A DNA stretch of 64,000 nucleotides from Convolutriloba macropyga (taxonomy: Eukaryota): NCBI RefSeq assembly GCF_964194025.1, contig NC_134473.1:66278001-66342000 (forward strand), written 5' to 3'. Positions within the stretch are counted from its first letter, which is position 1. The number at the start of each line of letters is the position of its first letter. Shown in pieces: positions 17,233-52,500 of this stretch. The translations under genes were made by a program, and so were the position numbers. A model generated the notes under the pieces. It did not search any database. It had not been told where the DNA came from and saw only the letters and a list, made by a program, of their open reading frames with translations.

Positions 17233-17622
17233 TAAATTGCTCTCGAATGAAGTTTGAAGATGTTGTAAACGTTTTTTTTTTTGAAAAATTTCTGCTGGAC
17301 CGTTTTTGTGCTTCTGTTCTGGAACATTCTTTTGGTTTCCCTTCTCGAGTGACTTTTCACGCTTGACTTCTTGATTTTTGCGTGATCTAAGTTACTCTCA
17401 TTCAGAAGTTAAATTCGTGGCTAACAGAAATTATATGGAAAGCGCCTGTTAGCTGAGTGTTTAATGTTAATGCTTCAGTCTAGTACGTCGAAGGTCGCGA
17501 GTGCGAACCCTCCTAGTCATTTTTTTGCACCCAAGGAAATTTATCTAGGCTACACTTCCCTCTGAATTAAATTGACCCGCCTGTCAATCGAGATCAATTT
17601 AGAGCGAATTTAGTCGGTTTGT
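17233..17622 (+). mobile_element. Family-B1 Helentron-like element with internal tRNA-like cassette (17442-17519)
   Basis: 5' aattgctctcgaa; 3' tcgagatcaatt...tagtcggttt; A-box tagctgagtgtttaa, B-box-like gtgcgaacc. Confidence 0.7.
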
Positions 17623-17635
17623 GGTTCTTTTTGTT

Positions 17636-18052
17636 TAGTTGCTCTCAAACGAAATTTGAGAGCTATTTTATTCCTGTTCTTTTCGTTGCCTGAACCTTAT
17701 AACTTTACGTCCTCAAAAGCCGATAAACAGGTATAGCCCGGAGGGCATCAATTGGTTGAACAGCTCGCTTAGAGTCTTTCGCCTTTCTAGTCTCGATTAC
17801 TTGATTCCCCAAAACTACTTTGAGTAGACATTTTTGTATTTCTTAGGTTCTTAATCTTTAAAGTTTGACCCCCCGTTTCAGTCACCCCCTTCACTCCACT
17901 CCACCAACGCCAACACTAAACCGTCCACCTTTTATCACTTGATCCCCCAGCTATCCGCTCACCCCCCCCCCCCCCCCAATGCTTGCTTCCCTAATCCGTA
18001 ACTCACTTGCCGGTTGTTTGAGAGCAATTCGCCCGACGTTAGTCGGCTATGT
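17636..18052 (+). mobile_element. Family-B2 Helentron-like element (same termini as B1, C-rich interior)
   Basis: 5' ttgctctcaaac; 3' gtttgagagcaatt-cgcCCGACgttaGTCGG-ctatgt; internal aaacaggta..gcccggagggcat motif. Confidence 0.75.
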
Positions 18053-19226
18053 CTAAATAATAACAGGCTTTGATTTCCAATTCATTTTTTGTAGCCTTTT
18101 TGTGACAACTAGTTCCAGGTTGCTTGTAACTACGGATTTGCGCTAAATGTTTCATACATGATATAGACCAGCTCTTGGCGCCTCTATGCAACGGAAATGA
18201 TTTTCTGTGTGTGAGATGACTTTGCGCTATTCGATAAAAGTTTTTGACCCTGCTTAACTGAGCTTTTTTCTAACCAAAGACATGAAAACCTTATCGAATG
18301 TCATATAAAATCAGATATGCGAAAAGAATGAAATTTGTAAGTTAAATGTGTTTCTGTGTGATAAATGTCATTGGTATTTTGCCTTTGAGCTGTGAAAAAG
18401 TTCATCGCAAGCTATGCTGAATCATTTTGAGAAGAAGATATCATCTTTCAAAACCTACGTTCTTACTGCTTACCTAAATTTTTTTTGCTTTCGGTTACAC
18501 CGATCAACTCCAGTAACAATTTAAAAGAAAATTGCAGGCAACTGCATTTTTCTGGAAATCAGATGGTTGTTTGAACAGGGATAATGGAGTAATTTAAAAG
18601 TTGGAATTGGAGCAATTTTCGTAGTGGTTATTTTTGGGTTGCTAGCATTTTCAAGGTTTCTTGACGATCTTCTCAAGTGAATTAGCAACGTTAATGTTAT
18701 AGCTGCAAGTGTTCATTGTCCGTAATTTTTCGTTCGTTGTTGGGTAATGATTTATTTGGCGACAGGTAATCGGTTTTGCTTTGGTTAAGTTATTTCCCAG
18801 GTTTGTTTTTCTCTTTGTTCTGTGTTAACGAATTTTAAAGATAGATTTGATTATCAATTTTTCAGCGTGTTCACTCTTAGAAAGAGCAGCCTGGTCATCA
18901 TACGCCGTGAAGCACTATCGGCAATTCTAGTCAATTGAACAAACTACGTCCGATTTTCTGAACGGATTTTTGTATTGGACAACGCCTTCAAATCACAAAT
19001 CGTAGCAATTTCGTTCGACCACGTCTTATTTTGTTTTTTTTTTCGTGGCCAGATTGCTTTGTTGCGAGCGTTTGATCAACGGTTCGAAAAGCGCCATTTT
19101 AGAGTTTTTGTCCTTTCTTACGCTTGTCAACTTCACTGGGGTTGGTGGTGTCATCTGTTTCATCAATTAAAGAATTTTGTGATCCTCAATTAGTTACTTC
19201 TGTCGGTCTCGTCTTCGTCGTCAGTA

Positions 19227-22200
19227 TTATTGTTCTGACCCCACTTGTGGGGGGAGGAACTATACACTCAAATGGGATTTTTTGTTCAGTCAATTTTGGC
19301 CGATCGATATATTCATCGAAGAGAAATGTGAGTGATATCATTAAAAAGCTCGTCCAGCGTAAAATTCGAAATTAAAAAGATTTTTTGAATTTCGTATTTC
19401 TCGAGGAGTTGTTGAGGTTTAAAGTTTTGTGTGAAGACGTGATATTTGAATGATTTTGTTCACTTTTAGCGTAATTTTTGTTCAAATTAAGGCTTTTCTA
19501 TAAAAATTTTATTTCAAAATTACATTTCACGTTACAAAATGAAACAATTTTGTGTTACCAGAAGACCGATAAACAGGCTAGATCTGGTCTCGTGTGAAAA
19601 TTTACTATAAAAAAAACTCGAATTCAATTTGAGAGCTGTTTTTTTTTTAGAAAACTTTTCCTATTTTTTATTGTTTTTTTAGTCACTTAGAGACTAGTCA
19701 TTTTCATATCGAGGTTCCTTTAATGGCAAATCTCATTTACAGTCACTTGATAACCAATGAACAAAAAGTTCAACTGCAAGGAAACGCTCATGTGTTTTTT
19801 TTGTCTTCGACTCTGAGTTTTCGAAATTTTTAATGAAATTTTGATTTTCTTTTTGATATGTAACTAAATTTTGGGAGCCCTATGGCATAAACTCGCTAAC
19901 TAAAAGTGCAATCGGCTTTCTAATGTGTATTAGGTAAACCTTTATAGTGCTTTGAATGGACAGCTAATAGCTGTCAAGACTTTAAAAATTTTTCGAAAAT
20001 ATTTTTTAACAATAAACAATATTAAAAACAAAAGTAAGTCAGTTTCGGTAATGGCGGGAGACAGGACCCCATTCTTTTTTACTGCAATCAGAACTAATAT
20101 GGTAAGCGGTTTTATCTGCTAACTATTGGTTTTATGACTTCGATAATACGAGTTTTCGTAATTTCAAAAAAACTTCGGATTTTTTTTTAAATTTTGGTTC
20201 CTTTTGAAATCTTATCTCATTCTGTTCGCAGTCCCCATTGGCTCATTATGTTTGGCAGTCACCATTGGCTTAATCAACACCTCCAATGGATCCTAGATAA
20301 AGTTTTTCAGAGAAAGAAATATGGTTTAAATGACTTCGACACTTTCTTATCAAATTTCCGCTGAATTTTTTTTGGTTTTTGCCTGGTTTTAACGTCGTTT
20401 TCTTAATCATAGGACTTGCTGTGATGTCTTATTGCTGACATATTGATGATAAACATCCAGTTCTGTCCATCGAGGCATAAAATAGTGTATTTTTTTCTTC
20501 TGTTGAAAGCTCTTAAATTTAATGGCTGTTGAGACTTTAATAAATTATTTTTTAGATTGTTTTTGGACATTAACTACTCTTAACCTTATTTTCGTGAACC
20601 TTAAGTCAGTATCAATAATGACATGACATTTTTTTCTGCTGAAACTAAAATGAATCTTGCTAGTGGTTTTATCTTCTAACTACTGGTTTTGTGACTTCGA
20701 GGACTCGAGTTTTCATATTTTTAAAAAAATTTTGTATATTTTTTTTGTAATTTTGGTTCCCTTTGAAATTCATCACCTTAACCTAATATTGATAGTTCTC
20801 ACTGATTATCTCACAGAAGGGGTTCGATGGATCCTGGATAAAGTTTGCAGAAAAAAGTATCGTTTCGACACTTTCTTGCACTTTCCCACTGAATTTTTGG
20901 TTTTTGCCTGCTTTTGTTGTTGTTTTCATAAGACTTATTTTGACTTGTTATTGATAATCTAAGAATGATAAACATCCTTATCTCCCTATTGAGGCATAAC
21001 TTTGTGTAATTATTGATTTCCGTTGAGAGCTATTGAATTTAGTGGCTATTAAGACTTAAAAAAAACTATTTTTGGACATTATAAAACCATTATAAAACAT
21101 TTTTCATGAACTATAAGTTAGTCTCTGTAATGACAGGACCACCCTCATTTTTACTGCATTGGAAAATACTCTGGGAAGCGGTTTTGTCTGGTAAATATTT
21201 TTATGAATTCGATGCCACGAGTTCTCATAATTTCAAAAAAAATATCGGATTGTTTTTTGTAACTTTGGTTCCTCTTGAAATCTTATCTCATTATCCTAAT
21301 ATTGATAGTTCACATTGACTTCTAAAAGACGTCCAAAGAAGCCTTGATAAAGAGTTCAGAGAAACGCGTTTGGTTTAAATGGCTTCGACACTTTCTTCTC
21401 GGACTTTTCTACTGAATTTTCGGTTTTTGCATATACTTGTTGTTTTCATAATCATAAGACTTATTGTGATGTCCTGTTATTGACTGATGATTGACAAATA
21501 TCCCCGCATTCTCATTAAGGCATAACTTAGCGTATTTTTGTCTTCCGGTCAAAGCCATTGAATTTAACATCATTGATATAACGGGTTTTCACAAAAATTT
21601 CGTGGTTTTATTATATTTGTTCATACTTGTTGATTTTTTGAAGTCATATTGTTAAGAATTAGAAGAACCCCATCGCTGCTAAAGATTTATTTGAGATTAC
21701 AATTTTTGCTAAATTTTTTTCCTTTTCTTGGCTTCGACATTTTTCCTCGCTCGTTTTTTTTTTGAATTTGCTGTTCTGCCTTTTTTTAAAATTCTTCATG
21801 TAGGCGTAAAATGCGGACTGGTCGCACAGGCTTCTAATGGAGGATTCAATGAATGATGTTGCCAATGCACTAAGTTTATAGCGAATAGTAGTAAAGTTTA
21901 CAATATTGTTCGTTCAAAAAGATTTTTTTTTACTTTTCAGTTTTTGTTCTTTTCGTCAACTTGTAATTTATTCTCATCCTTGAGAGGTTCCATCCAATTT
22001 TTTGCTTAAATTCAGAAATTATTTTTCCATTGATACCATTTTGTAACTGATGTTTTGTTTGTTGGACAATATGCGTTTTCATAAAAGTTTTGTGAGTGGT
22101 CAATATTTGTGTTTCTTTTTCTCTTCTTTTATCATATTCGCTGAAAAATTTTTGTTTTTCGCTGATTTTGTTGCTTATTTTCTCGTAGTCTTTCTAATGG

Positions 22201-22391
22201 CAGATCTTGTGAGCGCTGTTTTGTGACATGGTATTTTTTATCTCCTTTAGTAGTTCGATTTTTAACGATTTTTCAAAATTCAAACATCTATTTTTAATTA
22301 TCTCATCATTAGGTTGACAATTAAGTAAAAAAGGTAGATGAGCTCGGGTCGGAACATCATGTGCGAACGCACATTAACGAGTATCCTTGTT
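19227..22391 (+). mobile_element. Family-C Helentron-like element (~3.2 kb) with three internal ~530 bp tandem units
   Basis: 5' ttattgttctgaccc; 3' gggtcggaaca (22346-22356) + hairpin ATGTGCGaaCGCACAT (22359-22374) + taacgagtatccttgtt; internal units at about 19975, 20530 and 21050. Confidence 0.8.
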
Positions 22392-23229: not shown

Positions 23230-26200
23230 ATGCCGAAGTTAGACGATTTGGCTCTCAATCTGAAGTTGCTGACGAAACAGTTGGAGAGGGAAGCTAAGAA
23301 AAGCAAACAGTCTCAACATCAACAGAGAAGTAAGAATATTTATGTCAATTTCAGTTTGAAGAGAGAAAAATTGGCGTTAGACTTCAGAATTTTCAAACGG
23401 TTAATAGGTGGATTATTTAGAGAACGGTCTTTCTGTAACGATAAAGGTAAAACCTTTTACATGAAGCGCAGCTTTTCAAAAAAGGAATATCTTGAATAGT
23501 CAAACCTTGGTTTATTTTGAAAAAGCATTGAGTTACAATAAGTGTGTACCTGAGAGAGAGAGAGAAAAAAAAGTAAATTCACTTAGATAGGCGAACATGT
23601 AGCTAATGCACTTTTGGTCGTTGTTAATTGTTCTCGAACGAGGTTTGAAGCGATTATTGTAAATTTGTCTTTTTTTTGCAGAGTTTTTACTTGCACATAT
23701 TTTCGCTTTGTCTAAAATGTTCTTTGACTTTTGAGTGACTTTCACATTTCAGTACTTAATTTTCGAGTGATATGAGTTGACCTCGTTCTGAAATAGTTTG
23801 GTGGTAAAAGCGATTGTAAGCGAACGCAATCACGAGGCATTGGAGCTGAGTTGCTAAGATTTCAGACTGTGACCCCGGAGGTCAGGGTTTCGAGAGGTAC
23901 CCTTTGAAGTCGTTTGCACCCATTTTTATACCTCCTCTAAATTAAATTTCCCCTCGCCTGTCGTACGAGAGCACTTCAGCCAACGTCAATCTGTTTATGT
24001 TTAAAACTTGAAGATGCAGATATTAGACTAGGTGATGATTGACTGCAATGAACTGAATGGAAGTGACACCGACGTACATGGTTTTGAAATTTTTATGCTG
24101 TCTCGCTATATCATGGTTTGATTTTTTGGATAAATTGCAGAAGTGTGACGTAATTTGTACCCGTTATCCGAGCAGAAATGTCTAATTCAACTATATAGGA
24201 ATACGAGTGTTAACCGACACACAAATTAGAAGACACACGTACTAGTCGACAGATTTCATCAGGACGCAGTTAAAATGACATAAATCAAAATTGGATAGTT
24301 CAGTGTTATTGGAATTCTGAGGCATGGCCAAGTTAGATGATAGTATTTACAGGCGCTAGTGAAAATGGCAGACGTACCAAAATATAGAAATTTTATTGCT
24401 GGCCAATCACAATTGAGAAAATGGGAATAGTGTTTTCTGATTGCTCAACAAACTCTCCATGTTTTATAATAGGATATGAATGTTAACGTAAAATTGCTCA
24501 GAAATCGCGATAAGCCGAAAGAGAAATCGTATTTTTTTTTGGGAGGGGAACTGATCTCATATTCGGTTGTAATAGATTCATATCAAGTCCCACGGGCCGC
24601 TGAGGCATGGCCATGGCCCGTGAGGCATGGCCAGGTGCGGTAAAAAAATACAATCTAGAATTAGGCTAAGGCCCATTTAGGCTAATTGAACGCATAAAGG
24701 TAGTGTTTTAAACTTCTCAACCAATCACATTCGTTGAAAATTCTATATTTTGGTACGTCTATTTGTTAAAACGTCAATTTACAGCCTGTTAATGTTTGTG
24801 TTAAACCAAAAGGCTGCTACTCTACCCGCTTAGTGCGAGGACAATTATCATGAACTTTGGTTTTCGAGTAGTTATATTTGCTTAACTGTCGACTAAAAGG
24901 TGTGTCGGCTAATTTTTGTGTCGTCCAATTGACCGGCCACGTAAATACAGTAACAAATCAAAACTGGTTGTAAAAATTACGCGCGCTTGTTAATTAAGTA
25001 CTAGAGTACTGCTTTTGAATACTCGTTATCAATGGTTTCCACCTATGGCCTATTTGCCTTGTTTCACTCAATTAAAAACTCGATAAAACAAAAAATACTA
25101 ATTGTATATCAAACTGCTGCTTTTCGATGTATCGATTTTTTAATGGACTGAAAGCCGAGAGAAGCTATTAATGACGATAGTTGAAAGCAGTATTCTAATG
25201 TGCTTAATTTAAAAGCGTACGTAGTTTAAGTGTCCGTTTTCATTTCGATCAGTTATTAGAAAGTTTTGTATTCTTGCATTATTTTATTAATGGACACAAA
25301 AAACACTTACGACTGTTATTGAAACACATTAGACTACTGCTTTCGACACTCGTTATTAATGTTCTCACTCGGCCTTGGAGCTCATTTCACTCAATTAATA
25401 ACTCGAAAAAAAATACTTCAGTATCAATTTTGTTCGTAGGGCATCTATATTAAAGAATGCAAAAAACGCACACTTGTTAATTAATATGCATTTAGTGTCC
25501 AAAACAAGTCGCGCTTTTAAAATACAGTAAATCCGCTCAATTCTGGGAAATGTTAATTGTGTTCTTTTTATTGTGTTGTGTAGGTAAACTGAAGAAAGCG
25601 ATAGAGCAGAATAACATGGAGGGTGCCAAGATCTACGCAGAGAACGCCATTCGTAACAAGAACGAGGAGCTTAACTACCTCAAGTTGGCTTCGAGGATAG
25701 ACGCAGTGGCGGCCAGGGTGAACTCGGCTGCCAAAATGGGTGCACTGACTAAGAACATGTCTGGTGTGACCAAGGCACTCGACAGCTGCATGAAACAGTT
25801 CAGTCTGGAAAAGGTAATCACACATTGCTAGGGTGCTTAGCTGGTGCTAAAAACCTATGGATGGAAGAAAAATGTTCATATAAGAAAAATTTGACAAAAA
25901 TGTTCTTTTAAATTCATATGGGAAAAGGAATAATTGATTATTGTTCTTATACAACTGCTTTAACTTTACAAAGTAACGTTATGCATATGAAAGTGTACGA
26001 TCGTTGTGCTATCAATGTTCAACTTAAAAATGTTTACGAATTCGGTTATTTTATTGATTGATAGCAATATTCGACGCGGGAAGGAAAGGAAGCAAGAAAA
26101 TTTGAAATTTTATGGAGAAATTAAATAGATGAAAGAATGAATGCTTGGAAGCGCAAATTTCTCCCCTCCACGGCAAGAATATGTAGAAATGTTTGCGTTT

Positions 26201-29200
26201 GAGTTTGAAAACTAAAAACAGTGAAAATTTGTTCTGTACATTTTTTGATGCCTTGAATCCATAGAACTCAAATGTGGCTTTGTTGTATGTCCTAATGTGA
26301 TTAGGTGCAAGGCCTGATGGAAAAATTTGAGGGCCAGTTTGAGAATCTGGACGTTCAGGCCTCATCAATGGACCAGGCAATGTCCAACACAGTCACCACC
26401 TTCACACCTGAAGACCAGGTGCGGGGCCTCATGCAAGAGGTCGCCTCTGAGGCTGGTCTTGATCTCAACACCCAAATAGCGGTCAGTTCTTTCTACAGTT
26501 TTGTTATACTAACTTCGGATCGTTTCCTTATTTATCCACTCTCCCGGCATATAGTACGACTTCAAAGTGAAATGAGAATTCTATAAAACGACGCTAACTC
26601 AGCTAATTTGTGTTCGCTAAGATGGAAAACAGCAACAAGGAAGATGTTATTTCAGCGAAGGCTGAAGTGTTCATATCTGCTTGCTATGATACCGTTCTTA
26701 ACCCCAACTCGAGATAGAACATGGCGAATTATCTTAGTTTTTGAACTTTATGTGGTTATATTTGCTGAAATGGCCATTCCACAAGCTGAAGAATTTGTTA
26801 TCGATGTAAAATCACTAATTAGGTTGTTCACATAGACTTTGTTCACACAAATTTTGTCCTGGTGAAAGATCCTTGAACCACTTTTTGCACTGCTGACATC
26901 TGTAGTCCGCTCATGCAACGAAGATGTCAGTTCGTCTAGGAAGCTAGAATATTTTTAACTCCTTGTGAACGCTTTTAATTGCTCTCGAATGGGAAGCAAT
27001 TATTGTAAACGTGTGTCTTTTTACGGCTCGAAGAGTATTGGTATTCTACAGGTTTTTTTTAGCTAGAGCAAGTTTGTTCATAACTTGACTTTTGACTTCT
27101 TTCGTTTCGAACTTTTACCTCTGTTTTTGATTCTTGAGTTCTGTTTTCGAACATTGGACTTTAACAGTAGCTTAGTTTGTAATGTAAAGTAATTGGGAAC
27201 TGCTGATAATATTCAAGGTTATGAGGCATTTTGAGATTTTTTGATCCTTTATAAGTCACCCCTACTTTGTCTAAACTACAGACCCCCCTCCCCCCACCTA
27301 CCTACCTGTACCTGCCCTCCCCTACCCACCTACCTCCTCTTCCCCCACCTACCCCCATCAACCTAACCCAACCTACCTACCCTCACCCCTCCCTCACCTA
27401 ACCCCAACACCTACCCACACCCGTGTAATGAAAAATTGTGCCTGTATTTTCTAAAATTCTTTATTGTATTCTATTGGGCTACTTTTTTGTTTTCTCGTTC
27501 TGATGTTTTTACCATTCTGATGGTTCACATGTTTTAGTTTTGATGTTCGGATTTCAGTAAGGTTAGGTTAGAAATTATAATGCCCGACGCTTCAAGTCGT
27601 TTCCGGTATTCTACCGGCTACGTTTTTATGCAAATTTTTCGCTCGACAGTTTTGTGTTTTTCTTCTAGAATAATCTTTGACTTCTCAAGTGACTTTTTCA
27701 CGCACTTCTTGGTTTTTGAGTGATTTCAATTGCTCTCGCTCCGACATAAAGTTTGTTGTTCAAACAAAACCGATTGTTATAGACTCAATGACAAGTCACT
27801 GATAGCCGAGTTGTTAATACCTCCGGCGAGGTGACGTAATCGGACTCAGGAGGTCGTGGTTCGAATCCTACCGCCGGCTGATGTTTTCGCACCCATAAAT
27901 TTATCGAGGCTACAGTCCCTGAATTAAATTGCGCAATTAAATTGCGCCGCCTGTAATTCGAGAGCAATTTTTCGACGTTAGTCGGTTGATGTTAGTTTTA
28001 AAAAAATGTGAAAAAATAATAAAACATCTTGCAGGAATGCTACCATTTTTCTGCTAGGCTACTGCAATCATAATTAATAGCCGAGAAGCGATAGAGCGGT
28101 CATTTGTCTCATCTTGGTTATGGCGATTCGAAGAGGAGTATTGGTTTTCTATCGGTCTTTTTTGTGGGAAATACTTTTGTTCGTGGCGTATTTTGACCTA
28201 AATGCGAAATTGAATAGAATACATGTGAATAATTTTATGATGAACGAGAGTAATTTTTTGGTCATGCGACGCAATTACGGAATGCCTTTTTGACTTAGCG
28301 CAAGTTTTTGACAATGCAATGCATATAGTTAGCTGATTTTAGCTGGTTTTTGTGCCCATTTGTCCATTATTATTGATTGCTCTTTATTGTCGCTTTTTAA
28401 TTGAAAAATGGTTCTTCCATTTGAGAAGCAAAACTATCTATCCTAATAATTTGATAAGTGTTTTTGGGGAGCCCATTAATTGAAGACAAATTTATGGAAG
28501 AATTATGCACTGAAAGCTCGAATTTTAGTTTATTTTTGTGCCTGTTTCATAATTGTTTGTTTTGTATTTTCAAACAATTTTTTTTGTCAATAAAAGCGAT
28601 GGTGGTTTCCATTCAAGTTGTTTGGATTAATGAACTTCTGGCTTGAGTTGCTGACAAAGTGGACATCTTAAAGGTTTTATCGGTCATTTTTTATTCAATT
28701 TTTAATCAATTTTTATCACTTATTATCAGTTGTTAGGTTTTTTGTCACAGTTTAGTTCTGATGAAGCTGTGGATGGATATATGTCAGATCTATGCTTTAT
28801 TAGAAAGAATTTTAGAAAGAAGTTCATAAAAATGTTATAACTTTTTTGCTGCTAATTACTGAAGCTCTCACTGCTTGAGTTCACTGGACCTTCTGTTCAC
28901 TTGCTCGCAAACAAAGTTTTTGGCAATTATATTAGCCCTGTGGTCTTTTTTATGCAATTTTTCCCTTGAACGAATTTTGCGTGACCTTTTTAATTTTTCC
29001 TCAAAAACGTTGAAACAGGTAAAGCCCGGAGGGCATCAGTGTCCGAGCAGCTTTTAGAGCCTTACTAGTCTTGAAGTATGTGATTCTGGGTGTTCTTAAT
29101 TTTAAAAGTTTGGCACCCTCCAATCAGCCCTCACCTCAACACTACCCAGTGCATGAATTCATGTTATTGTAATAATACAAAACATTCCTGTCTTCAAGGT

Positions 29201-30946
29201 TTACGTATTTCCGAAAACTTTCGTTTTAAATTTTCGTTAATTTAAATTGCTTATTTTCGTTAATTTCATGTGAGAGAAGGTTAAAGCGTTCATCATATAG
29301 CATAAGTGAGAAGATCGGAAAAGTTTTGGTAGCTTTGTTTTGGAGGTTTGTTAATCGTTAATTTTTAAATAGTTCAAGATCGATAGGATCAATAAAATTT
29401 CTGTAAAATTTTGTTTTCACTTGATCAATAAAAATGGTGCTGGGAATAAAAGTATTCAGAAGAAATTGTTTGTTGTCAAATTCTACAATTTCATAGAATT
29501 TGATTTTGTTGACTTTTTTATAGAATAAAATTGCTTTTTGTTTAATTGCTCTCAAACGAAGTTTTTAGCAATTATATTAGGTCTGTTGGTCCTTTTATGC
29601 GATTTTTCGTTTGACCGATTTTTCGTCTGACCAATTTGATTTTTCATCCTCAAAAACGGGAGAAACAGGTAGCGACCAGAGGGCATTAGGTGCTCTTTGA
29701 GCCCTTCAGCTCCCTTGTCAGCATGCGATTCACACAAACTGTTTTGGAGACTTATACTTATGGTGTAAATAAAATAAATAAGTGTTTCTGTGTAATCGCA
29801 GCCTTAGGCTTTCAGTCTGCAGTGTATGAACAGTAGCCTGTTCTCAGCTGTCCTTTTTCAATTATTCCCCACACCTCAGACTGTTCATTTGGTGAGCATG
29901 AATTCTCTCTTCTTTTGGTAACTATGGCCACATTTTTTGCGTCTGAGACTTTCACGTGGTACCATTATTGCAGCCAACATTGGCGGTTCTTAGATGTTGA
30001 CCACCCCCCCCCCCCCACTTCACCCCCAATCCCCACCCCTGCACATCATTTGGGTCGTAAGGGTTAAGAGTACCGTGCAGCCAAAGCCCCCCCCCCCTCC
30101 CTCCGTTGCACCCCCCGCTGCGCTCACCTCACGCGCCTGCTATTAAGCTAAAGCTAGCCTCACTAAAACGTAGCTAGCAACTGGCAAAGCTAACCGGTCG
30201 TTTGAGAGAAATTCGCCCGACATTAGTTTTCGTAGTTCTGTTCTGATTCATTTTCAATTAGCCATCCTGCTGTATAAATTGTCTGTCAAAATCCGAGATG
30301 TAATGGCGCTCTTAGTAGTGCGAGCAAATGTTTGGTTTTGTATCTCTCAGTGCTTTTTGGTCAATTTGTCAGGGCTGCCAAAATAAAGCGTTAAATTCTT
30401 GCTTATAATTCTTGGGCAGAGTGTTAGGAGAATTTGTCGTGATCAATATTTGTTTAGACTGTCGTTAAGTTTTATTTAGCGCTTGCTGAAACTCCGAGTT
30501 GTTTCCCGAACTCTGAGCTGAAAAGAGGTCACATAAGCCTGGTAATTATGAAGGTTTTATTACTTGAATGACATCAATTCTAGAAATTTAATTTAAGAAT
30601 AAGGATAATTTGAAATAGGAGTCATTTTTTTCAGCCGCAGTTTTTTCCTTGGGTCTTGATGGTTATCTTAAATATGGAGTCTCAGTGGTCTATTTTGCGG
30701 CTATTGTCCGACAATCTACCGGCTATGATATGATGAATTGTTAGCTATCAATCTCAAATGTGGGAAAATCCTGTGCCACGCACAATCACAGGAGCCTCCT
30801 TAACCTTTGGAACAATTCTAGTTTTTGTATATAAAGCCGTGTGAACTTTGCAGGTGGCCCCGACAGGCGCTGCTGCTTCGTCTCAGAGCGAAGAGCAGGA
30901 GGAACTTTCGAGACGGCTGGCGGCTCTCAGAGACACCCACCAGTAA
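23230..30946 (+). CDS. CHMP1: Charged multivesicular body protein 1 (ESCRT-III, CHMP1/Did2), 4 exons, ~199 aa
   Basis: Exons 23230-23329, 25584-25813, 26305-26481, 30854-30946, phase-consistent GT-AG. Motifs AKIYAENAIRNKNE, MEKFEGQFENLDVQ, C-terminal MIM1 EELSRRLAALR; AATAAA at 31250. Confidence 0.93.
23624..24002 (+). mobile_element. Family-B1 element with tRNA-like cassette (23836-23912), CHMP1 intron 1
   Basis: 5' ttaattgttctcgaacg; 3' cgtacgagagcactt...tttatgtt. Confidence 0.7.
24349..24789. mobile_element. MITE-like element with imperfect TIRs
   Basis: acaggc...agacgtaccaaaatataga versus tctatattttggtacgtct...gcctgt; internal GC-rich gaggcatggccatgg module. Confidence 0.55.
26975..27993 (+). 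mobile_element. Family-B1 element (tRNA-like cassette 27796-27881) interrupted by a nested family-A-like element (27022-27624)
   Basis: B1 sequence attgtaaacgtg...ttttt|atgcaaatttt is split by an insert with subTIRs acggctcgaag / cttcaagtcgt and hairpin CCGGTAttcTACCGG. Confidence 0.75.
27283..27422. repeat. C-rich low-complexity tract (ccta/ccca-like units); G-rich on the minus strand
   Basis: Seen directly; lies inside the nested element. Confidence 0.85.
29543..30230 (+). mobile_element. Family-B2 element, CHMP1 intron 3
   Basis: 5' ttaattgctctcaaacga; 3' tcgtttgagagaaattcgcccgacattagt; C-rich tracts. Confidence 0.7.
30631..30729 (+). mobile_element. Minimal (~100 bp) family-A derivative
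   Basis: agccgca ... tgcggct subTIR pair + ccgacaatctaccgg + ctatga. Confidence 0.5.
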
Positions 30947-32241: not shown

Positions 32242-33170
32242 TTAATTGCTCTAAAACGAGCTTTTTGCAGTTATATTTGTCCTGTGGTCTTTTTTATCAA
32301 AGTATTTTTTTATTAGTCCTGTGGTCGATTAGTCCAGTGATTTTTTGTCTGACACTTATGATTTTTCGTCCTCAAAAACGGTATAAAAAGGTAACGCTCG
32401 GAGGTCATTAAGTTCTCTGTGAGCCTTTCGGCTTACTAGACTCTAGGTATGCGATTCACCTGAAATTGTTTTGGAGACATAAATTCATGGTTTGAAGGGC
32501 GGTTCTGAGATTTTGGCCCTCCTTTTCATCCTCCCCCCATCACCCCTCCCCACTCGGTGTTCGTCCCCACCGCCCATAACCCAGCTCGCTCGACCCCCCT
32601 TTTGCCCCTCTCCTGTGACTAGTTTTCAAGTTCAAGTGACTTTTTCACGCTTCGCTTCATTTTTGTTTGTTAAATTAATCTTAATTAGTCTGAAAAAGCT
32701 TAGACTGCAGGAGTTAGCTGCTAAAAGTGTAATGAAAAGTGCACAGAAATTGATTTTACTTATAATTACTCACGAACGAAGTTTTAAGAAATTCATGTAA
32801 AAGGTGTCTTTTTAATGCAAAATTTTTGCTGGGCCGTTTTCTTCCGAAACATGCTTTGGATTTCACTTCTCTATGACTTTTTCACTCGTGATTTTATGGT
32901 TTTTTTGAGTGATTTGAATTGTTTGCTTTCAGAAATTAAGTAGTTTCATAAAAAATGAAACCAATTGTGAGCGAAGAGAGTACATAGCCCGTGTAGCGTA
33001 TGGTTAATGTCCTGTACTCTCAACCGAGATGTCACAGGTTCGAAGCCGTCCTTATTCAAAAGATTTTGCACCAGCTTTGTGATAAGATTTTGCTCTTTTA
33101 TTCAAAAGAGTTTCTCTAGATTTGTGAGTTGTTCGGAAGCAATTTGTCCGACGGTAGTGTTTTCAGTTTA
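32242..33170 (+). mobile_element. Compound B2 + B1 elements; tRNA-like cassette 32986-33058
   Basis: B2 5' at 32242 (ttaattgctctaaaacga); B1 5' at about 32762; 3' ttcggaagcaatttgtccgacggtagt. Confidence 0.65.
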
Positions 33171-33531
33171 AATCCTGTTGTAAATTTATTTCTAATAAAA
33201 GCAGCTAAGGTAATCCCCTTATCCTTCTGGATCAAAATCTTAATTGGTCTTTGCTGGTCGTTTTAGAGCAATTCGTCCTTTTTGTAGGGTTTTCAGAAAA
33301 CAGCCTTCCTTGTCAAAAAAAAGGAACGGCTTTTTCAGTTGTGGTCTTTACTAACAAATTTGGTTCAAATTTGAGTCACGGTTTTCTGGAGCTACGTCAC
33401 TTCTATGGAGTCACAATGTGCTAAATAGAGCGAATTTTTGGTATTATTGTTATTCCACGATTTCCCTCAAAATTGTCATTTTTGTCTAATAGTTACTCAA
33501 GTAGCAATGAGAGTTGCTGTACTGCATCGTT

Positions 33532-33870
33532 TAACTGCCCTCAAACAATGCTTGTGACAATTTTTTAGGTCCTTCATGTTGATCGTTTCAATGCGATTTT
33601 TTGCTTGATCGATTTTTCGTCTTGTGGATTGTCGTCGCAAGCGTGATAAACAGGTGACGCCCGGAGGGTATTGAATCGGCGAGCAGTTGTTAGCGCTTCA
33701 CTAGTCTCTATGTGTACAGTTAGCGAAACTGCTGAAAAGACAAATTCATAGTGTCAGGGGCAATTTTTGGCTGTTTGGACCTCCACCAACAGTTCATTTA
33801 AGCTATCCTCCCTAAGACCAAGCTTTCTACAGCCCAAGCAATTCACCCGACATTTAAATGGTAATGTTTA
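33532..33870 (+). mobile_element. Family-B2 element
   Basis: aactgccctcaaac ... aaacaggtgacgcccggagggtat ... agcaattcacccgacatt. Confidence 0.6.
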
Positions 33871-37500: not shown

Positions 37501-40500
37501 TTAGTTTTGAGAAGGCATGCAAAATTTAGCGCCGTCTTTGTCTGTGGTTCAGTTTTCAATTCTATGAAAGTTTTGAGCGGGAATATTGTGAGCAATATTC
37601 CCAATAAAATTCTTGAAAACTTCAGCAACTTGTCGTAATCGTTGTTAAGTTGATTAAAAAGATAAGCACACTTGCTATTAATCACTCAATTTTTTTTAAT
37701 TAACTTGGCTTCACCTTGGAGCTCAATAACTTCTTAAGACTGAAGCAGGCTGCTACAATAGAATCTAACCTCATCAGTTGTGAGCAGTTCGGTCGAGGTT
37801 ATCCGGTCAACGCTCTTTGCGGTTACAAAAGTTACATAACTTACGCCACTGTGCAATTGAATAGAGTTTATTGTTCCGACCCCACTTGTGGGGGGGGGGA
37901 GGAACTATATACTCAAATGGGTTTTTTTTGTTCAGTCAATTTTGGCCGATCGATATATTCACCACAGAGAACTGTGAGTGGTATCATTGAAAAGCTGGTC
38001 CAGCGTAAAATTGAAAATTAAAAAGATTTTTTGGCTTTCGTTTTTTTCGAGTAGTTATCGAGGATTGAAATTTTGTGTGAACACGGGATATTTGTTCACT
38101 TTTAGTGTGATTTTTCTTCAAATCAAGATATTTTCTATAAAAATAGTTTTTCAAACTTAAATTTCTTGCCAAAAAATGAACCAATTTTGTGTTCGTAATA
38201 GACTAAAGGCGTTAAAACATACTAGTTCTGGTCTCATAGGGAGGTTCAATATCAAAAAAATTTGAATTCTGTCTGAGAGCTCTTTTTTTTATAAAACTTT
38301 TCTACTTTTTTTTTGCTTTTTTAAGTCACATAGAGACAAGTCACTTTTCATATCGAGGTTCCGTTAATGACAAACCTCCTTGACAGTTAAATGAAGCCCA
38401 GTCAACAAAAAAAATCGTTTTCAAGGAATTGCTCATGATTTTTTTTTACTTCGAATCTGAGTTTTGTTAATTTTAAAAGAAATTTTGAATTTCTTTTGGA
38501 GGTTTTACTAATTTTTTGGAGTATTATGGCATGGACTCACTGACTAACAATGCAATATGTTCCGTAATGAGATTTAAGTGAACATATCTAATGCTTTGAG
38601 AGGACAGCTAATAGCTGTTAAGACTTTAAAAATAACTTTTCGAAATTTTTTTTCGATTATTCACCAATCGTAAACTTATTATCGTGAACTGTAAGTCAGT
38701 CTCTGCGATGACAGCACCCTTATCCGTCCCACTGTAACCAAATTTGATCTGGCTAGCAATTTTATCTTCTAATTTTTTGTTATATAACTTCAATGACACA
38801 AGATTTCAAAAAAATTTAAAAAACTTTTGGATGTTTCCGTATTTTTCTTTACTTTTGAAATCTTATCGCATTATCCTAAGTTTGACAGCTCCTACTGGGT
38901 TAAAGAAAACCTTAAGTGGATCACATATTTAAATTTTTAGAGAAAAGCTGACGGTTTGAATGGCTTCGACCTTTTCTTCTCGCACTTTTTTACTGAATTT
39001 TTGTTTTTTGCCGGTTTTTGTTGTTGTTGTTGTTTTCATGGTCATAAGACTTCTTGTGAAGTCATATTGATCACCTATGTATGACAAACATCCCTATAAT
39101 CCCAATTGGGGCGTATTTGAGGGTGGTTTTTGGCTTCCGTCGAAATCTATTGAATTTAATGGCTGTTACGAATTTAAAGATAATTTTTTGAAAATTTTCT
39201 TGAACATTAACCAATCTTAAAGTTTTCGTGAACCGTTAGTCGGTCTCAGTTTTGACAGAACCCATTTATTTTCTACTGCAACTGAAATTAATCTCGTTAT
39301 CGGTTTTATCTTCTAACTTTTGGTTTAATGAATTCAGTGACAAAAGAATTCAAAATTTATAAAAAATTTTTGATATTTTCGTATTATTGGTTACTTTTGA
39401 ACTCTTATCATATTATCGAAATATTATGCACATTATCCAATTATTATTCTAATCCCAGTGGCGCAAAGAAGACATTGAGTGGATCACAGATAAAGTTTTC
39501 AGAGAAAAGTTAATGGTTTAAATGGCTTCGTTGTTTTCATAGTCTTAAGACTTATTGTGATAACTTATTGATTATCTATGCATAAATTTTTTTCCCGCCA
39601 TCTTGTTATTTCTGAACTTAGTTATTGACCTCCCTTGAAAGCTTTTGAGTTTAAAGGCTATTAAGACTTTTTTTTGGACATTAACCAATCCTAACTTTTT
39701 TTCGCGAACTATTATTCAGCCTTAGTACTTACAGGATCCTTTTTTATTTCTAGTCCCGCCAAAAATAATCTGGTTAGCGGCTTAATTTTCTACCTATTAA
39801 TTTTAAAACTTCAATGCCATTAGTTTTCATAAATTTTTAATTTTCGGGTACTTTTTCTTATTTTTGGATCCTTTTGAAATCTTATCACATTATCCTATTA
39901 CTGATAGTTCCCATTGGTTTAGGGAAGACGTTCAACCGATCATAGATAAAGTTTTCAGAGAAGGACCTATGATCAAAAATTGCTTCGACACTTTCTTCTG
40001 GCACTTTTCTAATGAATTTTTAGTTTTTGCCTGCCTTTGTTGTTGTTTTCATCGTCACTTGATGTAACATCTTATTGATGAAATTTGAATGACAAACAAA
40101 CTTGTTGTCCCATGGAGGCATAATGTCTCGTATTTAGTGGATTCCGTTGAAAGCTTATGAATTAAATGGCGTTGATACTACGAGTTTTTTCAAAAGTTTC
40201 GTGGCTCTTATGTATTTGTTCATATTTGATTTTTTGAAATTATATTGATAATAAAAGAAGAATCCCAGTTCTGTAAAAATATTATATGAACATAGAAAAG
40301 TTTTTAGTGAAAAGTTCATTTTTTAATGCCTCCGACAATTTTCTCGCCTAATTTTTTTCTAGAAATTGCTGTTTTTGCCTGTTGTTCCTTAGGTAGCCGT
40401 AAATTGCCGACAAATCTCTTAAGCTTGTATTTGAGGATTGAATTAATGATGTTGCCCAAAGCAGTCAGTTCTTAGCCTTTAGTTTTAAATTTTATGATAT

Positions 40501-46500: not shown

Positions 46501-49500
46501 CAGTCACAAAAAAATACAGCATGCACTAAAAATGTGCTGATCAAATTTTGCGATTATTATGAATATTAAGAATTGATATTTGATTTGATAAAAGTCAACA
46601 GTGGCTGTTTGAAGAGTTAAATATTCAACCTTGAACAGCTTAAAGTTTGATAATTCTGTATAGAAGATTTCCCTGATCTGATACTTTTTTTACATGAAGT
46701 GATATTGCGAACGTTGTTTCTTATCACATTGGTTAATTTGTCAGGTGTCGATCCTCGGAAGCAGCACTCAAAAGTAGATGCATTCGCCATGGTCATCTTA
46801 TCACACGGCACACAGTAAGTAACATTTTCCAGTCCTAACTGTATTAAAATTGGGTATTTCCCATTATAGCCCCTACCCCCCCCCCCCCATCATGGTGATT
46901 ATACCGTTATTATAGCCCCACAGCTTACTAGTCAGATAACCTATAAGCCCCCCCCCCCCCTCCGCTCCGTTCCCCCAATCATGGTAATTATACCATAATT
47001 GGGGACTGAAAGACCCATTTAAGTATTAGTTTGCAGTTCGTGATGCATGTCAATAGATGCGAGCTATCACTTCGATACAATTTAAAATGTTGATCTTCAC
47101 GGAATCAATTTACTAAGCAGGTATTCAACAATTTATGTTGACGAAAAGTAGCTCATTTATTTAGATGAAAGTCGCTCTATTGATAAATAGAATCTTGATT
47201 TTTACGTGCTCTCGAACGCAGTTTGATGCAATTATTGTAAACGTGTTGGTCTTTTTTATGCCAATTTTTTTTTTACCGTTTTTGCGCTTTTGTTCTGGAA
47301 CATTATTTCACTCCTTGCGTGACTTTTTCACTGAAATGAAGTTCGTTGCCAATACAAGCGATTATGAGCGAACAAGAATCAAAGCCATCGGAGCTTAGTG
47401 GTTAAATGTGATTTGAGACTGCTATCCTGGAGGTGGTGACCGGACAATAGATCGAAAGGACAACAGATCGAAAACAGAAAAATTGGGACAATAGATCGAA
47501 AATTAATCTCTATTCTTATTGGTATAAATTAAGCATTATTTGCGAGCTGCAATATAATTACCAAATCATGGCCATGCCTCGCTAGCCATGGCCATGCCTT
47601 AGCGGCCCGTGAGACTTAATATGGATCTATCACAACCGAACAAAATATCACAACAGAACATGTTATATACTTGTATAATAAATGAGCGCTTAAATCTGAT
47701 TGGCCAAAACGCAACTTGAATTATTTAATTTTTGATCTATTGTCCCAATTTTCGCTTTCGATCTGTTGTCCTAGCACCTCTGGAGGTTGCCGTTTAGAAG
47801 CCTTCTGGGGTCGCGATTAAACACTAATTTAAATTGCCTCGACTATCGTTCGAGAGCAATTCGCCCGCCGTTAGTCGGTTTATGTTAAATGGTTATAGAT
47901 GTCTTCTGTTAGGAACAGAGAGGGTCATGACGTCATAATGAGCAGTGACTCAGAGGAGATCGAGTTCAAATATATCACATCTCAGTTCGCAGGAAACGTC
48001 GCCAAAACTCTTGCAGGAAAACCAAAGATCTTCTTCGTCCAGGTAAACTTGGTTAAAATTAATTTTAAAAAATTGCTCTAGTAACCTGACGTTTTGATAA
48101 TAAGACAATTAGTAAATAAATGAATTGGTTATGAATTTAGCAATTTGTTCTAATTATTTACTGTAACTATATTATTTAAAAATGGCGCCTTCAAATAACG
48201 ACCTTCAAAATAGCGCTATTGTAATCACAAAAAGGGACCATTCATAAAATGCTCTCGATTTAACAAAAAACGGCTCTTATTTGCCCGCTAACTATTTTTA
48301 ATCAATGCTAAATACTTAACCAAATCATTAATGTACCAATTGGGGCTTTCATCGAAAAGTAAAATTTATAGCAATAGAGCAATTTTTATTTATTAACTTT
48401 GATTAAATTTACCAAAGAACTAACTTTAAATTTCTAACAATTTTTCAGTTGGTGAAGTGTCAGTTATCAGGAAAAAATGATTTTATTTTGAAATAATTTT
48501 AGGCCTGCAGAGGGGACAAGACAGATCCGGGTCGAGAAATAGCGGTGGACTCCTCAGATGGGGTTGAAGGTTTGGGTCGTGGTATGGGAGAGGACGAGAC
48601 TGATTTCTTCTTCCGAACAATCACAATACCAGCTGAGGCTGATATCTTTGTTGCATACTCAACTCCTCCTGGGTAAGGACCTCTGATTTGTAGAACAGCA
48701 TGGAGTCTGTCCTTTACCTTCCCGTGAACAGAATACGTTTTTTAATTGCTCTCCAATGAAATTTGAAGCAATTATTGTAAATGTAAGCAATTGTTGCTGG
48801 CCTTTTTTGCGCTTTTGTTATTGATAGCCGTACAGCGATAGCTGGGGCTATTATTGGCCTTCTCTTGTTTTTTTTGTTGTGATTTTTGTTACGACCATAT
48901 GACGTCACAACCACTTCAAATCTGCTTTTTGTTCATTCATTCATGCAATTTCAACTGAATTACGTGCGTGACGTCATTTTTCGTTCTTAGTGGAGCGAGT
49001 TTTTTCGTTAATTTGCGTGATAAAATTTCCGGTCACACTTGACTTACCTCACTCACAAAAATGACTTCCTCACTTTGAAATTGACTTTTAATTACTTTAA
49101 TTCAAAGAGATAAGGTGAAGTGAATGTGTTTCACTCTAAATGAAGGTTATTAGAGAGCAGGTAATAGAGGCAGCAAAAACTAAAGGCAGCAAAAACAGGT
49201 AATAGAGGCAGCAAAAACAGATTTTTAATCAAAATATAACATATCAGTCTTCAATGAAAAGACGAATTTTTTTGGTCTGTCTTTTTTAATGTTTTTTTGA
49301 GACTGCAGATCTACGAAGTTATTGCGGCTATTTTCTGGCAATCTGCCATCTATGTTAGATCGTTTTGTGACTTTTCAAGTGCCTTTTTCACGCTTGTCTT
49401 CATTTTTGAGTGATTAATTTTTCTTGAACGAAGTTCATAGCAATTATTGTAAACGTGTTGGTTGTTTTTATGCAAATTTTTTGCTTGATCATTCTGCGTT

Positions 49501-52500
49501 TTTCTTCTAGAACCTTCTTTGACTTCTCAAGTGATTTTTTTCACGCTTTCGTTCATCTTTTCTGAGTGATCTCTATGGTCTCACACCGAAGTAATGCTTG
49601 TTGCTAAATTAAAATCTATTGCAGCATAGCTAGAAGAAGGGCCTGATAGCCGAGAGGGCACTGCTTCTGGTCAGTGAGCGGGAGGTCAGTGGTTCAAATT
49701 CTGCTGTGGTAAACTATTTTTGCATCCTTAAAGATAAATTTATCTACGTTATAGCCCCTGAATTAAATTTCCTCTCCTGTCGTTCAAGACCAATTCTTCC
49801 GACGTTAGTCTGTTTGTTTTCCATTGAGCTCACTCCGAAGTTAAATTGGTTGCTATGAAGATCAAAATTGTAGCAGAGGAAATCACAAGGTTCTTGTAGC
49901 CGAATGGATAATGATTACATTGAGTTCTCCGGTAGGTCGGGGGTTGAATCCCTCCATGGTCAGTTTATTTGCACTCATAAAGAAAATATTATCTAGTCTA
50001 CAGCCCTTGAATCAAGTTGTCCCACCTGTCGATTGACAGCAATTTCTCCGACGCTGGTCGGTTTACTAGACTGAACAAAGTAATGCTTGGTTTTTTAATT
50101 CTGATAATTGTTTGCAGGACCTGATAAGTAGCGAGACTAGACATTAAAACATAGATAGTTATGCCATTGCACAGGCTAAAGTTATCGCTTATGGGTTCTT
50201 ATATTCACTGGGCAAACTAAAGCAGTTACAGCCCAATGTTTTCATCGGCGAAGCAAAGTCACCTTCGTACGTCAAATCTATTGCCGTTCTTCTTAACAGA
50301 TTGATAAAAATTTTAGTTAACTTCCCCTAAAATGCATAAGAAAAAAATTACAATGTAAAGCCGCAATATACAGTTAAGAATACAACATGATATACAAAAC
50401 AATAAATAATAAAATATATAGTCTAATGGGTCAGACGAAAAACCGGTCAAGCAACAAATCGCATAAAATGACTAATATATTTGCTTGAAAACTTCGTTTG
50501 ACAGCAATTAACAATAAGTTTTTAGCTGATACTTTTGTTGTTCAAGCCAATCCAATTTAATAAAAATCTGCTTCCAATATCACTCTTAAACAACATCTAG
50601 TTTCCTTGAAACAAATGTTGAAAAAACATTTTTAAAAAGATTTTTTAAAGGATATATATATTTTTAAGAACCTGACCTTAAGTTAGTAAAATCGAGCTTA
50701 AAATTTTATCTACAATTTTCTATGTATATTGTGAACTTTTACAGCGAAAATATAAATGCAGATCCAATGTTTTCAGTGACGTCTTGCAAATGAATTATTT
50801 TTGGGTCCTTTAAAAAATCTTTTTAAAAATGTTTTTTCAACATTTATTTCAAGGAAACTAGATGTTGTTTAAGAGTGATATTGGAAGCAGATTTTTATTA
50901 AATTGGATTGGCTTGAACAACAAAAGTATCAGCTAAAAACTTATTGTTAATTGCTGTCAAACGAAGTTTTCAAGCAAATATATTAGTCATTTTATGCGAT
51001 TTGTTGCTTGACCGGTTTTTCGTCTGACCCATTAGACTTTTCGTCCTTATTAACGGATCAACAGGTAGAGATTCCCCAAATTTGTGATTTGGTGATTACT
51101 CTGGCGATGTGATTAGATAATGGCATTGCGCCCATCCCCACTTGCAATGCTTATAAGGCCCAGCTGGGCACTACCTAAGCCCACCGGTAGCGGCTCGTTT
51201 GAGAACAACTTGACTGAGGTTATTTATGTTTCTTTATTCTTATCAAGCGTAAGTTTTTTTGATCTGTGACGTTGTTCATTTTATTCTCATAGCGGAGAAC
51301 TTAATTTTTATAAGCTGAAAAATTGTCGCTTAGTAAGCGACAAAAAGAATTTTACGAGATCGAGGAGCTCTGGATCGATCATACGTTCTCCTATTAAAAC
51401 AGGTTTTAATTACCCATTTTAATTGAATTTCGCCCAAGAAATTCTGTAGTTGTTACCAAAAACTCTTTCAACAAAGCACGGATTCTCGTTTGGGTCTTTT
51501 TCTATTGTGAAGATTTTTTTAACGTTCGATCTGGTTTTTTTGTTTTACTCAAGAAAAGTGAAGAGAAGTTGTTTTTCAGGGTGCTTGCGGCCGAGTGCTG
51601 GTTACAATTAATTACCGTTTGATAATATGGTATGAAATATTAGTGAATTTTCAATTTCAAAATGGATAACCGTGGAATCGCAATTACATCGCATCGAATG
51701 AATTTCGAGTATAGTGTTCGAGCCAAAGCCAACTTGACAGTTGCCACAAGACCTGTTTGATAATAGGCCTTGAAAAATTGTTTCAGTACCAAAATTGCTT
51801 AAGTATAATAATCGAATCTTGAATGCATCGTATCGATACATTGTTACAACCAACACTCGATTTTTCTGTTATGTTATTAGGTATTACCCCTCATACCTCC
51901 TCCCACCTCCATACGTAGCAGAGTAGTGTGGGCTATGAAGAAGGATAATCGTCAAACATTGATCCAATCACATTGAACGAATAAAAATCGAGTTAACCAA
52001 GACGATCGATGTAAAGTTCTGTTGTGTTCACAGGTATTACTCGTGGCGTAGTCCTGAAAGCGGCTCCTACTTCATGCAGCTGTTGGCCTACAGACTCTTC
52101 CACAATGCATACTTGCAGGACTATGACCTGCAGACTGTAGTCACTCTGGTGAGCCACGACCTCGTTCGCTTCCAGTCCAATGTGCCACAAGACGACAGAA
52201 TGCACAAGAAGAAACAGGTACTCTTTACTGATTAGATTGCACAGAAGTGGATCTAGATCTGGAAATTAGAAATACTGCAGCTGCAATCGATAATAAATTT
52301 TCCAGGAACTATTCGAGTTTGCGGGGGGGGGGGGGGGGTTGTAATGGCATTTTTTAAAAAAAATTGAGCAGTACTACGTTTGATATACAATTAATTAACT
52401 AAGTTGGTTTTCAAAATGTAGCTACAATTATCGCTGATCGCTTACTCGAGTGGACACGACATTATACTTGCTTTTAATAGAATAAATATAAATGGTTTCA

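Follow-up and report, generated by a model that had tools for sequence, protein, structure and literature searches.

A tRNA-derived cassette in B1, a Helentron-type repeat family of Convolutriloba macropyga

A stretch of 64 kb from the genome of Convolutriloba macropyga (contig NC_134473.1, positions 66,278,001 to 66,342,000; hereafter the window, with positions counted from its first letter) contains seven copies of a repeat family, here called B1, each with a tRNA-like cassette in its interior. What kind of element carries a part of a tRNA gene in the middle, how did this part get there, and what is left of it? The original prediction, made from the letters of the window, described the cassettes as a hypervariable payload of a DNA element that spreads RNA polymerase III (Pol III) units, either through repeated capture of different tRNAs or through diversification of a structured small RNA. 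Our analysis points to another history: with a probability that we put at roughly 0.72, B1 is a non-autonomous Helentron-type family of ~400 bp, in which a tRNA-derived module was acquired once and early, was inherited vertically, and has been drifting outside its promoter boxes. The window is part of a genome of 1.18 Gb in 4694 contigs; its G+C content is ~35%, its + strand has more T than A, and it contains introns and dense interspersed repeats.

The B1 unit and its ends

The B1 unit, ~400 bp in length, was defined from genome searches and alignments of ~100 copies. It consists of a conserved 5' module of ~210 nt, the tRNA-derived module (the cassette), and a conserved 3' module of ~110 nt. 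Consensus sequences of four subfamilies, A, B, C and D, were built from 11-17 copies each; subfamily A was sampled regardless of the cassette, and B, C and D were chosen by cassette similarity. The seven copies of the window (w1-w7) lie where they had been predicted, all on the + strand, and have the expected common flanks, 3' hairpin and T-run behind the cassette.

w1, 17233..17631, + strand: full-length copy with a diverged D-like cassette at ~17442-17519; module matches m5t at 17235, m5 at 17337-17430 and m3 at 17522-17625
w2, 23624..24002, + strand: subfamily A, cassette ~23836-23910; the 3' module carries a deletion
w3, 26975..27993, + strand: subfamily C, cassette 27796-27878
w4, 32762..33168, + strand: subfamily D, cassette ~32986-33060; the 3' module is degraded
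w5, 47202..47886, + strand: subfamily A, cassette from 47383, interrupted by a terminal inverted repeat (TIR) element
w6, 49412..49820, + strand: subfamily B, cassette 49640-49715
w7, 49823..50070, + strand: 5'-truncated copy that directly abuts w6; cassette 49889-49965, D/A-like
48744..48784, + strand: isolated 5' terminus fragment of B1 (m5t match, E = 1.8e-8)

The seven copies and the isolated fragment are all on the strand that is T-rich here. With up to two mismatches, the terminal 13-mer AATTGCTCTCGAA has 24 matches in the window versus 3.2 expected, and the motif GGAGGTC...GGTTCRA occurs 10 times versus 3.8 expected. The 12-mer CTGAATTAAATT, on which the prediction also drew, is not enriched by itself (27 versus 28.6 expected) and is informative in context only.

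At its 5' end B1 has a T-run and then the 13-nt AATTGCTCTCGAA; at the 3' end, TTCGAGAGCAATT is followed, after 3 nt, by the CCGACGTTAGTCGG hairpin (CCGAC-GTTA-GTCGG, with a 5-bp stem) and by TTTATGTT(T). The two 13-mers form subterminal inverted repeats (subTIRs), which are perfect in w3 (26977-26989 and 27957-27969), the youngest copy of the window (terminal branch of 0.029 in the flank tree), and in the A, C and D consensus sequences, with one mismatch on each side in B. Across 74 junctions, the frequency of T is 64-91% at positions -5 to -1 before the 5' subTIR, compared to a background of 27-46% from -6 outward. In all consensus sequences AGCAATT (element positions 24-30), located ~10 nt past the 5' subTIR, pairs with AATTGCT (positions 1-7). 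At 63 examined 3' ends conservation ceases 8-9 nt beyond the hairpin, so that the 3' subTIR starts ~38 nt from the end, and unrelated flank follows, with no A-rich, poly(A), simple-repeat or LINE-derived tail. No variable or recognisable target duplication was found at the B1 ends, and the boundaries are T-rich on both sides. In head-to-tail tandems (loci L016, L019 and L037/L039), the tail of one element runs into the subTIR of the next.

This arrangement can be compared with the definition of HINE elements, which have subTIRs of 12-15 bp, the 5' one located 2-4 nt and the 3' one 38-60 bp from the respective end, a palindrome 8-35 bp from the 3' end, a nested inverted repeat, and a TT or T-rich target (PMC4067079; PMC7492417). 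B1 agrees with it in subTIR length, in the position of the 5' subTIR next to a T-string, in the 3' palindrome and subTIR spacing, and in the nested inverted repeat; the Helentron/HINE (DINE-1-like) architecture that had been recognised in the window is upheld by the structural criteria of PMC4067079. We would classify B1 as a HINE by structure. A cut-and-paste MITE (miniature inverted-repeat transposable element) with TIRs was considered and rejected: the ends are asymmetric, with ~25 nt of conserved hairpin and tail beyond the 3' inverted repeat.

The 5' terminus, ~215 nt upstream of the A box, is present in 79 of the 88 copies. The truncated copy w7 begins at an internal subTIR-like motif, and this motif was considered as an alternative 5' end that would define a short form of the element; this was rejected, as the nine copies (of 88) that have no 5' terminus have varied break points.

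The tRNA-derived module

The consensus sequences of the four subfamilies were aligned end to end, and identity was calculated block by block, with the following ranges.

5' module: 83-85% between A, B and C; 72-74% to D
Leader of ~20 nt: 42-67%
A box: 67-93%
Anticodon-arm region (the middle of the cassette): 26-59%
GAGGTC-B box stretch: 71-94%
3' acceptor: 25-54%
3' module: 79-89% between A, B and C

All four consensus sequences match TRGCNNAGTGG (A box) and GGTTCGANNCC (B box) exactly, and in all of them the cassette is followed by T5-6 and then by GCACC(C). When they are examined as type-2 Pol III units, i.e., for an A box, a B box ~30-45 nt downstream, and a terminator of at least four T, the complete set is found in each. 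Among single copies, strict matches of each box are present in 24 of 69, versus ~0.001 or less by chance, and a T-run is located 10-19 nt past the B box in 21 of the 24. Since the consensus sequences keep the boxes, whereas most single copies have lost one or the other, it appears that copies decay after insertion and that the founder lineages kept the boxes.

There is little left of the tRNA besides these boxes. ARAGORN found no tRNA in the window and called one cassette among ~70 copies; Rfam found no tRNA or other known RNA in the window at gathering score, and nothing at E <= 1 in 14 loci. The minimum free energy z-scores of the cassettes are ~0 compared to shuffles, versus -1.3 to -3.4 for five host tRNAs. 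If a cloverleaf is imposed on a cross-subfamily alignment of 28 sequences, 56.3% of the cells pair, compared to 55.4% in shuffled controls (129 of 500 shuffles reach the observed value), and the covariation score in this frame is 0.181 versus 0.175 in shuffles. The true cloverleaf register pairs best among slid registers; this is the expected imprint of tRNA ancestry and not a sign of maintained structure. The T-stem had been described as still pairing, but only two G-C pairs, which are part of the B box, are kept, and the three outer pairs are unpaired in 12-19 of the 28 sequences. The absence of covariation, a folding energy no better than that of shuffled sequences, and the lack of any tRNA call except for the one by ARAGORN contradict diversification of a structured small RNA. 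A functional tRNA gene was rejected on similar grounds, i.e., no cloverleaf by ARAGORN (except for the one of ~70 copies) or Rfam and no covariation. Judged from its sequence, the cassette is a tRNA remnant that retains a predicted Pol III promoter and terminator and no longer encodes a foldable tRNA.

A first-look tRNA search of the genome produced 88,012 candidates, far beyond a normal tRNA set. Of these, 63 were scored and 20 were fetched, yielding five host types (Thr, Ala, Cys, Lys and Arg). The cassettes are not clearly nearer to any of these five types than the tRNAs are to one another, and parents proposed by eye (Arg or Gly for A; Lys, Glu or Thr for D) were dropped as unsupported. 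Dense arrays of real tRNA genes were noticed at C13:31.09-31.23 Mb, C7:44.04-44.10 Mb, C1:20.08-20.12 Mb and C15:4.79-4.83 Mb; the genes read in the arrays include Thr-TGT/CGT, Lys-TTT, Arg-TCG and Cys-GCA.

One acquisition or several

The window samples a large family. A whole-element genome search with w2 returned at least 911 candidates of the commonest type, A, with 68-78% identity. Cassette types have 688 genomic candidates for B (w6; 84-89% identity), 591 for C (w3; 85-91%) and 31 for D (w4; 74-89%, mostly 75-80%). The w1 cassette is 79% identical to the D consensus and, at the sensitivity applied, is a singleton in the cassette-only genome search; the same holds for the w7 cassette. Bystander copies in the fetched loci add the cassette types E, F, G and B2. 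A subfamily A element was also seen in a tandem array with a period of ~1.14 kb (L018/L027, C11:22.188-22.194 Mb); because at least three units have identical 5' flanks, this array is attributed to satellite-like amplification taking in the element.

The proposal that the variable parts are unrelated in every copy does not hold. Within the window, w2 and w5 have the same cassette type, w1 is related to the w4 type though diverged from it, and w7 resembles A and D to about the same degree. Across the family, the cassettes have a common length frame, from which only C (a 12-nt insert) and w1 (6 nt) depart, and the divergent block has identical boundaries in all subfamilies, i.e., there is one insertion point. 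The first 16 nt of the cassette are common to B, C and E. Many, although not all, pairs of types keep significant identity in the 24-nt middle, forming a chain of similarity: 75% for E-C, 71% for B2-B, 71% for C-w1 and 58% for D-A (each p <= 0.001 compared to shuffles).

The phylogeny of the flanks leads to the same conclusion. In a maximum-likelihood tree built from the flanks only, cassette types correspond to clades (B 94, C 99, D 86, B+C+E 97), and the cassette labels require 3 changes on this tree, compared to at least 12 in 200 shuffles. Because cassette types are clades of a flank-only tree, the cassettes were inherited with their flanks and not shuffled. Instead of a hypervariable payload we found cassette types that are stable within A, B, C and D and that track the flank phylogeny. 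Within A, agreement with the subfamily consensus is 0.80 for the cassette versus 0.84-0.88 for the flanks; thus, the cassette is slightly more variable than the flanks but not hypervariable. It looked hypervariable because at least four old subfamilies happen to be represented close together in the window. The outcome that the original prediction had set against itself, one ancient and decayed tRNA capture with no covariation, is largely what was observed; the exception is that, between subfamilies, cassette regions outside the promoter boxes have diverged much more rapidly than the flanks.

The proposed history is as follows. A tRNA-derived module would have been acquired once, early in the family, and inherited vertically afterwards. 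Founder lineages would have conserved both flank modules and, between them, the A box, the stretch from GGAGGTC to the B box, and the T-run; drift would have altered the leader, the anticodon-arm region and the 3' acceptor, and subfamily C would have gained its 12-nt insert. The element probably moves as DNA via rolling-circle transposition, with the Rep/helicase supplied in trans and T-runs as the presumed target of insertion. Candidate signals for this movement are the T-run, the 13-nt subTIR and the nested inverted repeat at the 5' end, and the subTIR, the hairpin with its 5-bp stem and the TTTATGTT tail at the 3' end. The Pol III unit cannot transcribe the whole element because it lies ~215 nt inside, has a terminator behind it, and is preceded by T-runs throughout the 5' module; an RNA-mediated route is therefore unlikely.

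The alternative with the most to say for it is repeated capture or replacement, in which a HINE backbone took different tRNA genes, or the heads of tRNA-derived repeats, several times at one internal site; template switching in rolling-circle replication, or gene conversion seeded on A-box/B-box microhomology, could have served as the route. The genome offers a very large tRNA-like pool (the 88,012 first-look candidates), cassette types differ from one another by 0.60-0.79, about as much as host tRNA species do (0.58-0.76, with one anomalous host pair at 0.22), and oyster HINEs combine related flanks with unrelated central repeats (PMC7492417). We nevertheless consider repeated capture, which the original prediction had put forward, unlikely and less likely than one old capture. 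Independent captures have to be reconciled with an insertion point and block boundaries that are equal in all subfamilies, a length frame identical except for one 12-nt insert, graded similarity in the form of the 16 nt common to B, C and E and the significant, chain-linked middles, and the congruence of cassette type with the flank tree; furthermore, the five host tRNAs that were sampled include no close match to any cassette, and the top matches of each cassette are all in HINE context. In the ordinary tRNA-derived short interspersed element (SINE), the other reading that invokes a tRNA-like head, the true unit would begin at this head and would adjoin or lie inside another repeat. The A and B boxes and the head are indeed present, and the genome is rich in tRNA-like repeats. 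However, homology starts at the subTIR, ~215 nt upstream of the A box, in the great majority of copies (79/88), and the T5-6 directly behind the cassette, together with the T-runs of the 5' module, would halt Pol III; the full unit is therefore not a Pol III transcript. Tails of the poly(A), microsatellite or LINE kind are also absent, as are variable target duplications, and the 3' hairpin, the 13-nt inverted repeat and the occurrence of head-to-tail tandems point elsewhere. A SINE origin of B1 is thus extremely improbable, and the earlier statement that it is not an ordinary tRNA-SINE is supported by the position of its start.

A functional, diversifying small-RNA cassette, i.e., a set of Pol III units with a selected variable middle acting, e.g., as guide or decoy RNA, would account for promoter boxes and a terminator that are present in all consensus sequences while the middle, located at the anticodon-arm position, differs. 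Yet within subfamilies the middle is no more variable than expected from neutral decay (in A, 0.80 for the cassette and 0.84-0.88 for the flanks), there is no covariation and no stable fold, and divergence is as high in the leader and the 3' acceptor as in the middle, which would be expected of unconstrained sequence. We regard such a function as very unlikely. A narrower proposal, that the Pol III promoter and terminator persisted in the founder lineages owing to selection, which would make B1 the first small-RNA-gene-derived DNA transposon family, is tentative, and we would sooner doubt it than accept it. Were it true, occupancy by TFIIIC/Pol III might keep B1 accessible to Rep or help it to evade silencing, or short tRNA-like transcripts might be used, and B1 would be the HINE counterpart of SINEs and TRIMp3 elements. 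Persistence of the boxes may mean either that they are in use, through TFIIIC/Pol III occupancy or short transcripts, or that they reflect the way in which the cassettes arose.

Several points weigh against a single early acquisition followed by DNA-level movement. (i) The B and C flanks are 85-89% identical, but their cassettes are only 51% and the middles 29% identical, which would also fit cassette replacement in one lineage; A and D are the closest pair in the cassette (68%), yet their flanks are among the most distant (72% and 62%). (ii) The boxes are the parts common to all tRNAs, such that their conservation is also expected under repeated capture. (iii) The comparison to parent tRNAs is limited to five host types, and the choice of B, C and D by cassette similarity, with consensus sequences from 11-17 copies, inflates the conservation of the cassette within these subfamilies. 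(iv) DNA-level transposition and the absence of a target duplication are deduced from structure, and a 2-3-bp TT(T) duplication is indistinguishable from insertion into a T-run. (v) B1 termini or modules were found in none of 21 Rep loci (20 loci with a Rep domain and the 10-kb region of a 2514-aa open reading frame, see below).

Related elements, neighbours and known systems

B1 has a sister family, members of which are found in the window.

17637..18055, + strand: member of the sister HINE family directly behind w1; subTIR AGTTGCTCTCAAA / TTTGAGAGCAATT
29544-30227: further member of the sister family
32244-33290: further member of the sister family, within which w4 is nested

The sister family has the 3' hairpin of B1, CCGACGTTAGTCGG, and a one-base variant of the subTIR (AATTGCTCTCAAA / TTTGAGAGCAATT), without the tRNA-like module; sister-type 3' ends make up ~15 of the 63 sampled genome-wide. 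Since the hairpin is shared but the tRNA-like part is absent, the tRNA-like module was added in a single lineage within a wider group of HINEs. As for potential sources of the transposition proteins, the genome contains at least 90 matches to the Helitron-type Rep (Helitron_like_N). An intact open reading frame (ORF) of 2514 aa (L089 598-8142, - strand, C4:51.24 Mb) encodes a PIF1 helicase domain together with an OTU protease and a Helitron-type Rep domain. ORFs of 2468-2515 aa, likewise intact, were also seen at C10:43.25-43.64 Mb, at C2:35.75 Mb and on C807, with the domains read in one ORF; the 2468-2515-aa ORFs are possibly active Helitron2/Helentron-like elements.

Two of the window copies have been invaded by other sequences. 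The 5' module of w3 holds an unrelated insertion of ~600 bp (27024-27620), which includes a C-rich low-complexity tract (CCCCTACC-like) at 27270-27420. The cassette of w5 is split by a 345-bp TIR element (47435-47779), with the 8-bp duplication CTGGAGGT at 47427-47434 and 47780-47787 read directly from the sequence; the inverted ends of this element are ~20 nt (GGTGACCGGACAATAGATCG...), and the pattern is that of a hAT-like MITE. A caspase-like exon was noticed at 47941-48042 on the + strand (Pfam PF00656, E = 0.004, below the cut-off); it suggests that the B1 copies sit sense-oriented in introns, consistent with insertion into T-runs. Elsewhere in the window, tandem-repeat blocks with a period of ~520 bp are located at 19200-21600 and 37900-40200, 18.6 kb apart and with up to 88% identity between the blocks, pointing to a segmental duplication inside the window.

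Retroposons (SINEs, Cassandra, Helenus) are known to be driven by Pol III promoters, which produce the RNA from which new DNA copies are made. B1 places a Pol III-type module in an element whose ends indicate DNA-level, rolling-circle movement, and in this module the boxes and the terminator have outlasted the rest of the tRNA in several old subfamilies. If the conservation of the boxes results from selection, a DNA transposon would be using Pol III or TFIIIC in a way not described so far, and at least thousands of potential TFIIIC/Pol III sites would be scattered over the genome, many of them in introns of genes. There is also a practical consequence: B1 copies inflate tRNA-like counts, such as the 88,012 first-look candidates, and repeat annotation pipelines could mislabel them as SINEs.

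Of the known systems, HINE/DINE-1 elements (Thomas et al. 2014, PMC4067079; oyster Cg_HINE, PMC7492417) are similar to B1 in most respects: 13-nt subTIRs with an inverted repeat nested in the 5' one, a 3' hairpin located 8-9 nt and a 3' subTIR located ~38 nt from the end, boundaries marked by T-strings, a T-rich target (presumed for B1) with no clear sign of a duplication, high copy number, head-to-tail tandems, and a modular build with conserved left and right modules around a variable centre. The difference is in the centre: in B1 it is a unit of tRNA origin that combines the A and B boxes with a T-run, and in known HINEs it consists of microsatellite or satellite-like tandem repeats; tRNA is mentioned 0 times in PMC4067079 and in PMC7492417. 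Another difference is the autonomous partner, which was not identified for B1 among the 21 Rep loci. B1 resembles tRNA-derived SINEs in that its tRNA-related part has decayed but still has the A and B boxes, and in that this part differs between subfamilies that share the other modules. Unlike in these SINEs, the tRNA-like part of B1 is internal, ~215 nt from the 5' end, with a terminator directly behind it; B1 has no poly(A)/LINE tail or variable duplication, and its ends are an inverted repeat and a hairpin.

TRIMp3 elements, i.e., Cassandra (5S), Helenus (tRNA-like) and Ajax (PMC10886601; PMC7215508), share with B1 a non-SINE, non-autonomous nature and a Pol III promoter that is derived from a small-RNA gene and is conserved as an internal module. 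They are, however, long terminal repeat (LTR) retrotransposons with LTRs, a PBS (primer-binding site) and a PPT (polypurine tract), in which the promoter can make an RNA intermediate, whereas B1 has no LTRs, its ends are of the DNA-transposon type, and its Pol III promoter has no obvious role in movement. A TRIMp3 identity of B1 was rejected, given that there are no terminal direct repeats and that the 5' and 3' modules are unrelated except for the inverted 13-mer. The TRIMp3 paper makes no mention of Helitrons or DNA transposons (PMC10886601; PMC7215508). In the open-access literature, Repbase being outside the scope of this search, we found no Helitron- or Helentron-type element described as carrying a Pol III module of tRNA origin; in the literature searched, a Pol III-type module inside a DNA transposon family thus appears to be undescribed.

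A further related case is a tRNA-Cys cluster of Arabidopsis that overlaps annotated Helitrons (PMC10701932), in which, as in B1, tRNA sequences are associated with rolling-circle-type repeats and with tandem amplification. The Arabidopsis tRNA genes are real and form one local cluster, for which Helitron predictors gave no confirmation; in contrast, the tRNA of B1 is decayed, and the family is dispersed in thousands of copies whose ends are defined and of the Helentron type. According to this 2023 paper, capture of a non-coding RNA by a Helitron would be a first (PMC10701932). Even if the boxes are under no selection, B1 is still a documented Helentron-type element with the remnant of a non-coding-RNA gene, a kind of capture that PMC10701932 treated as unreported.

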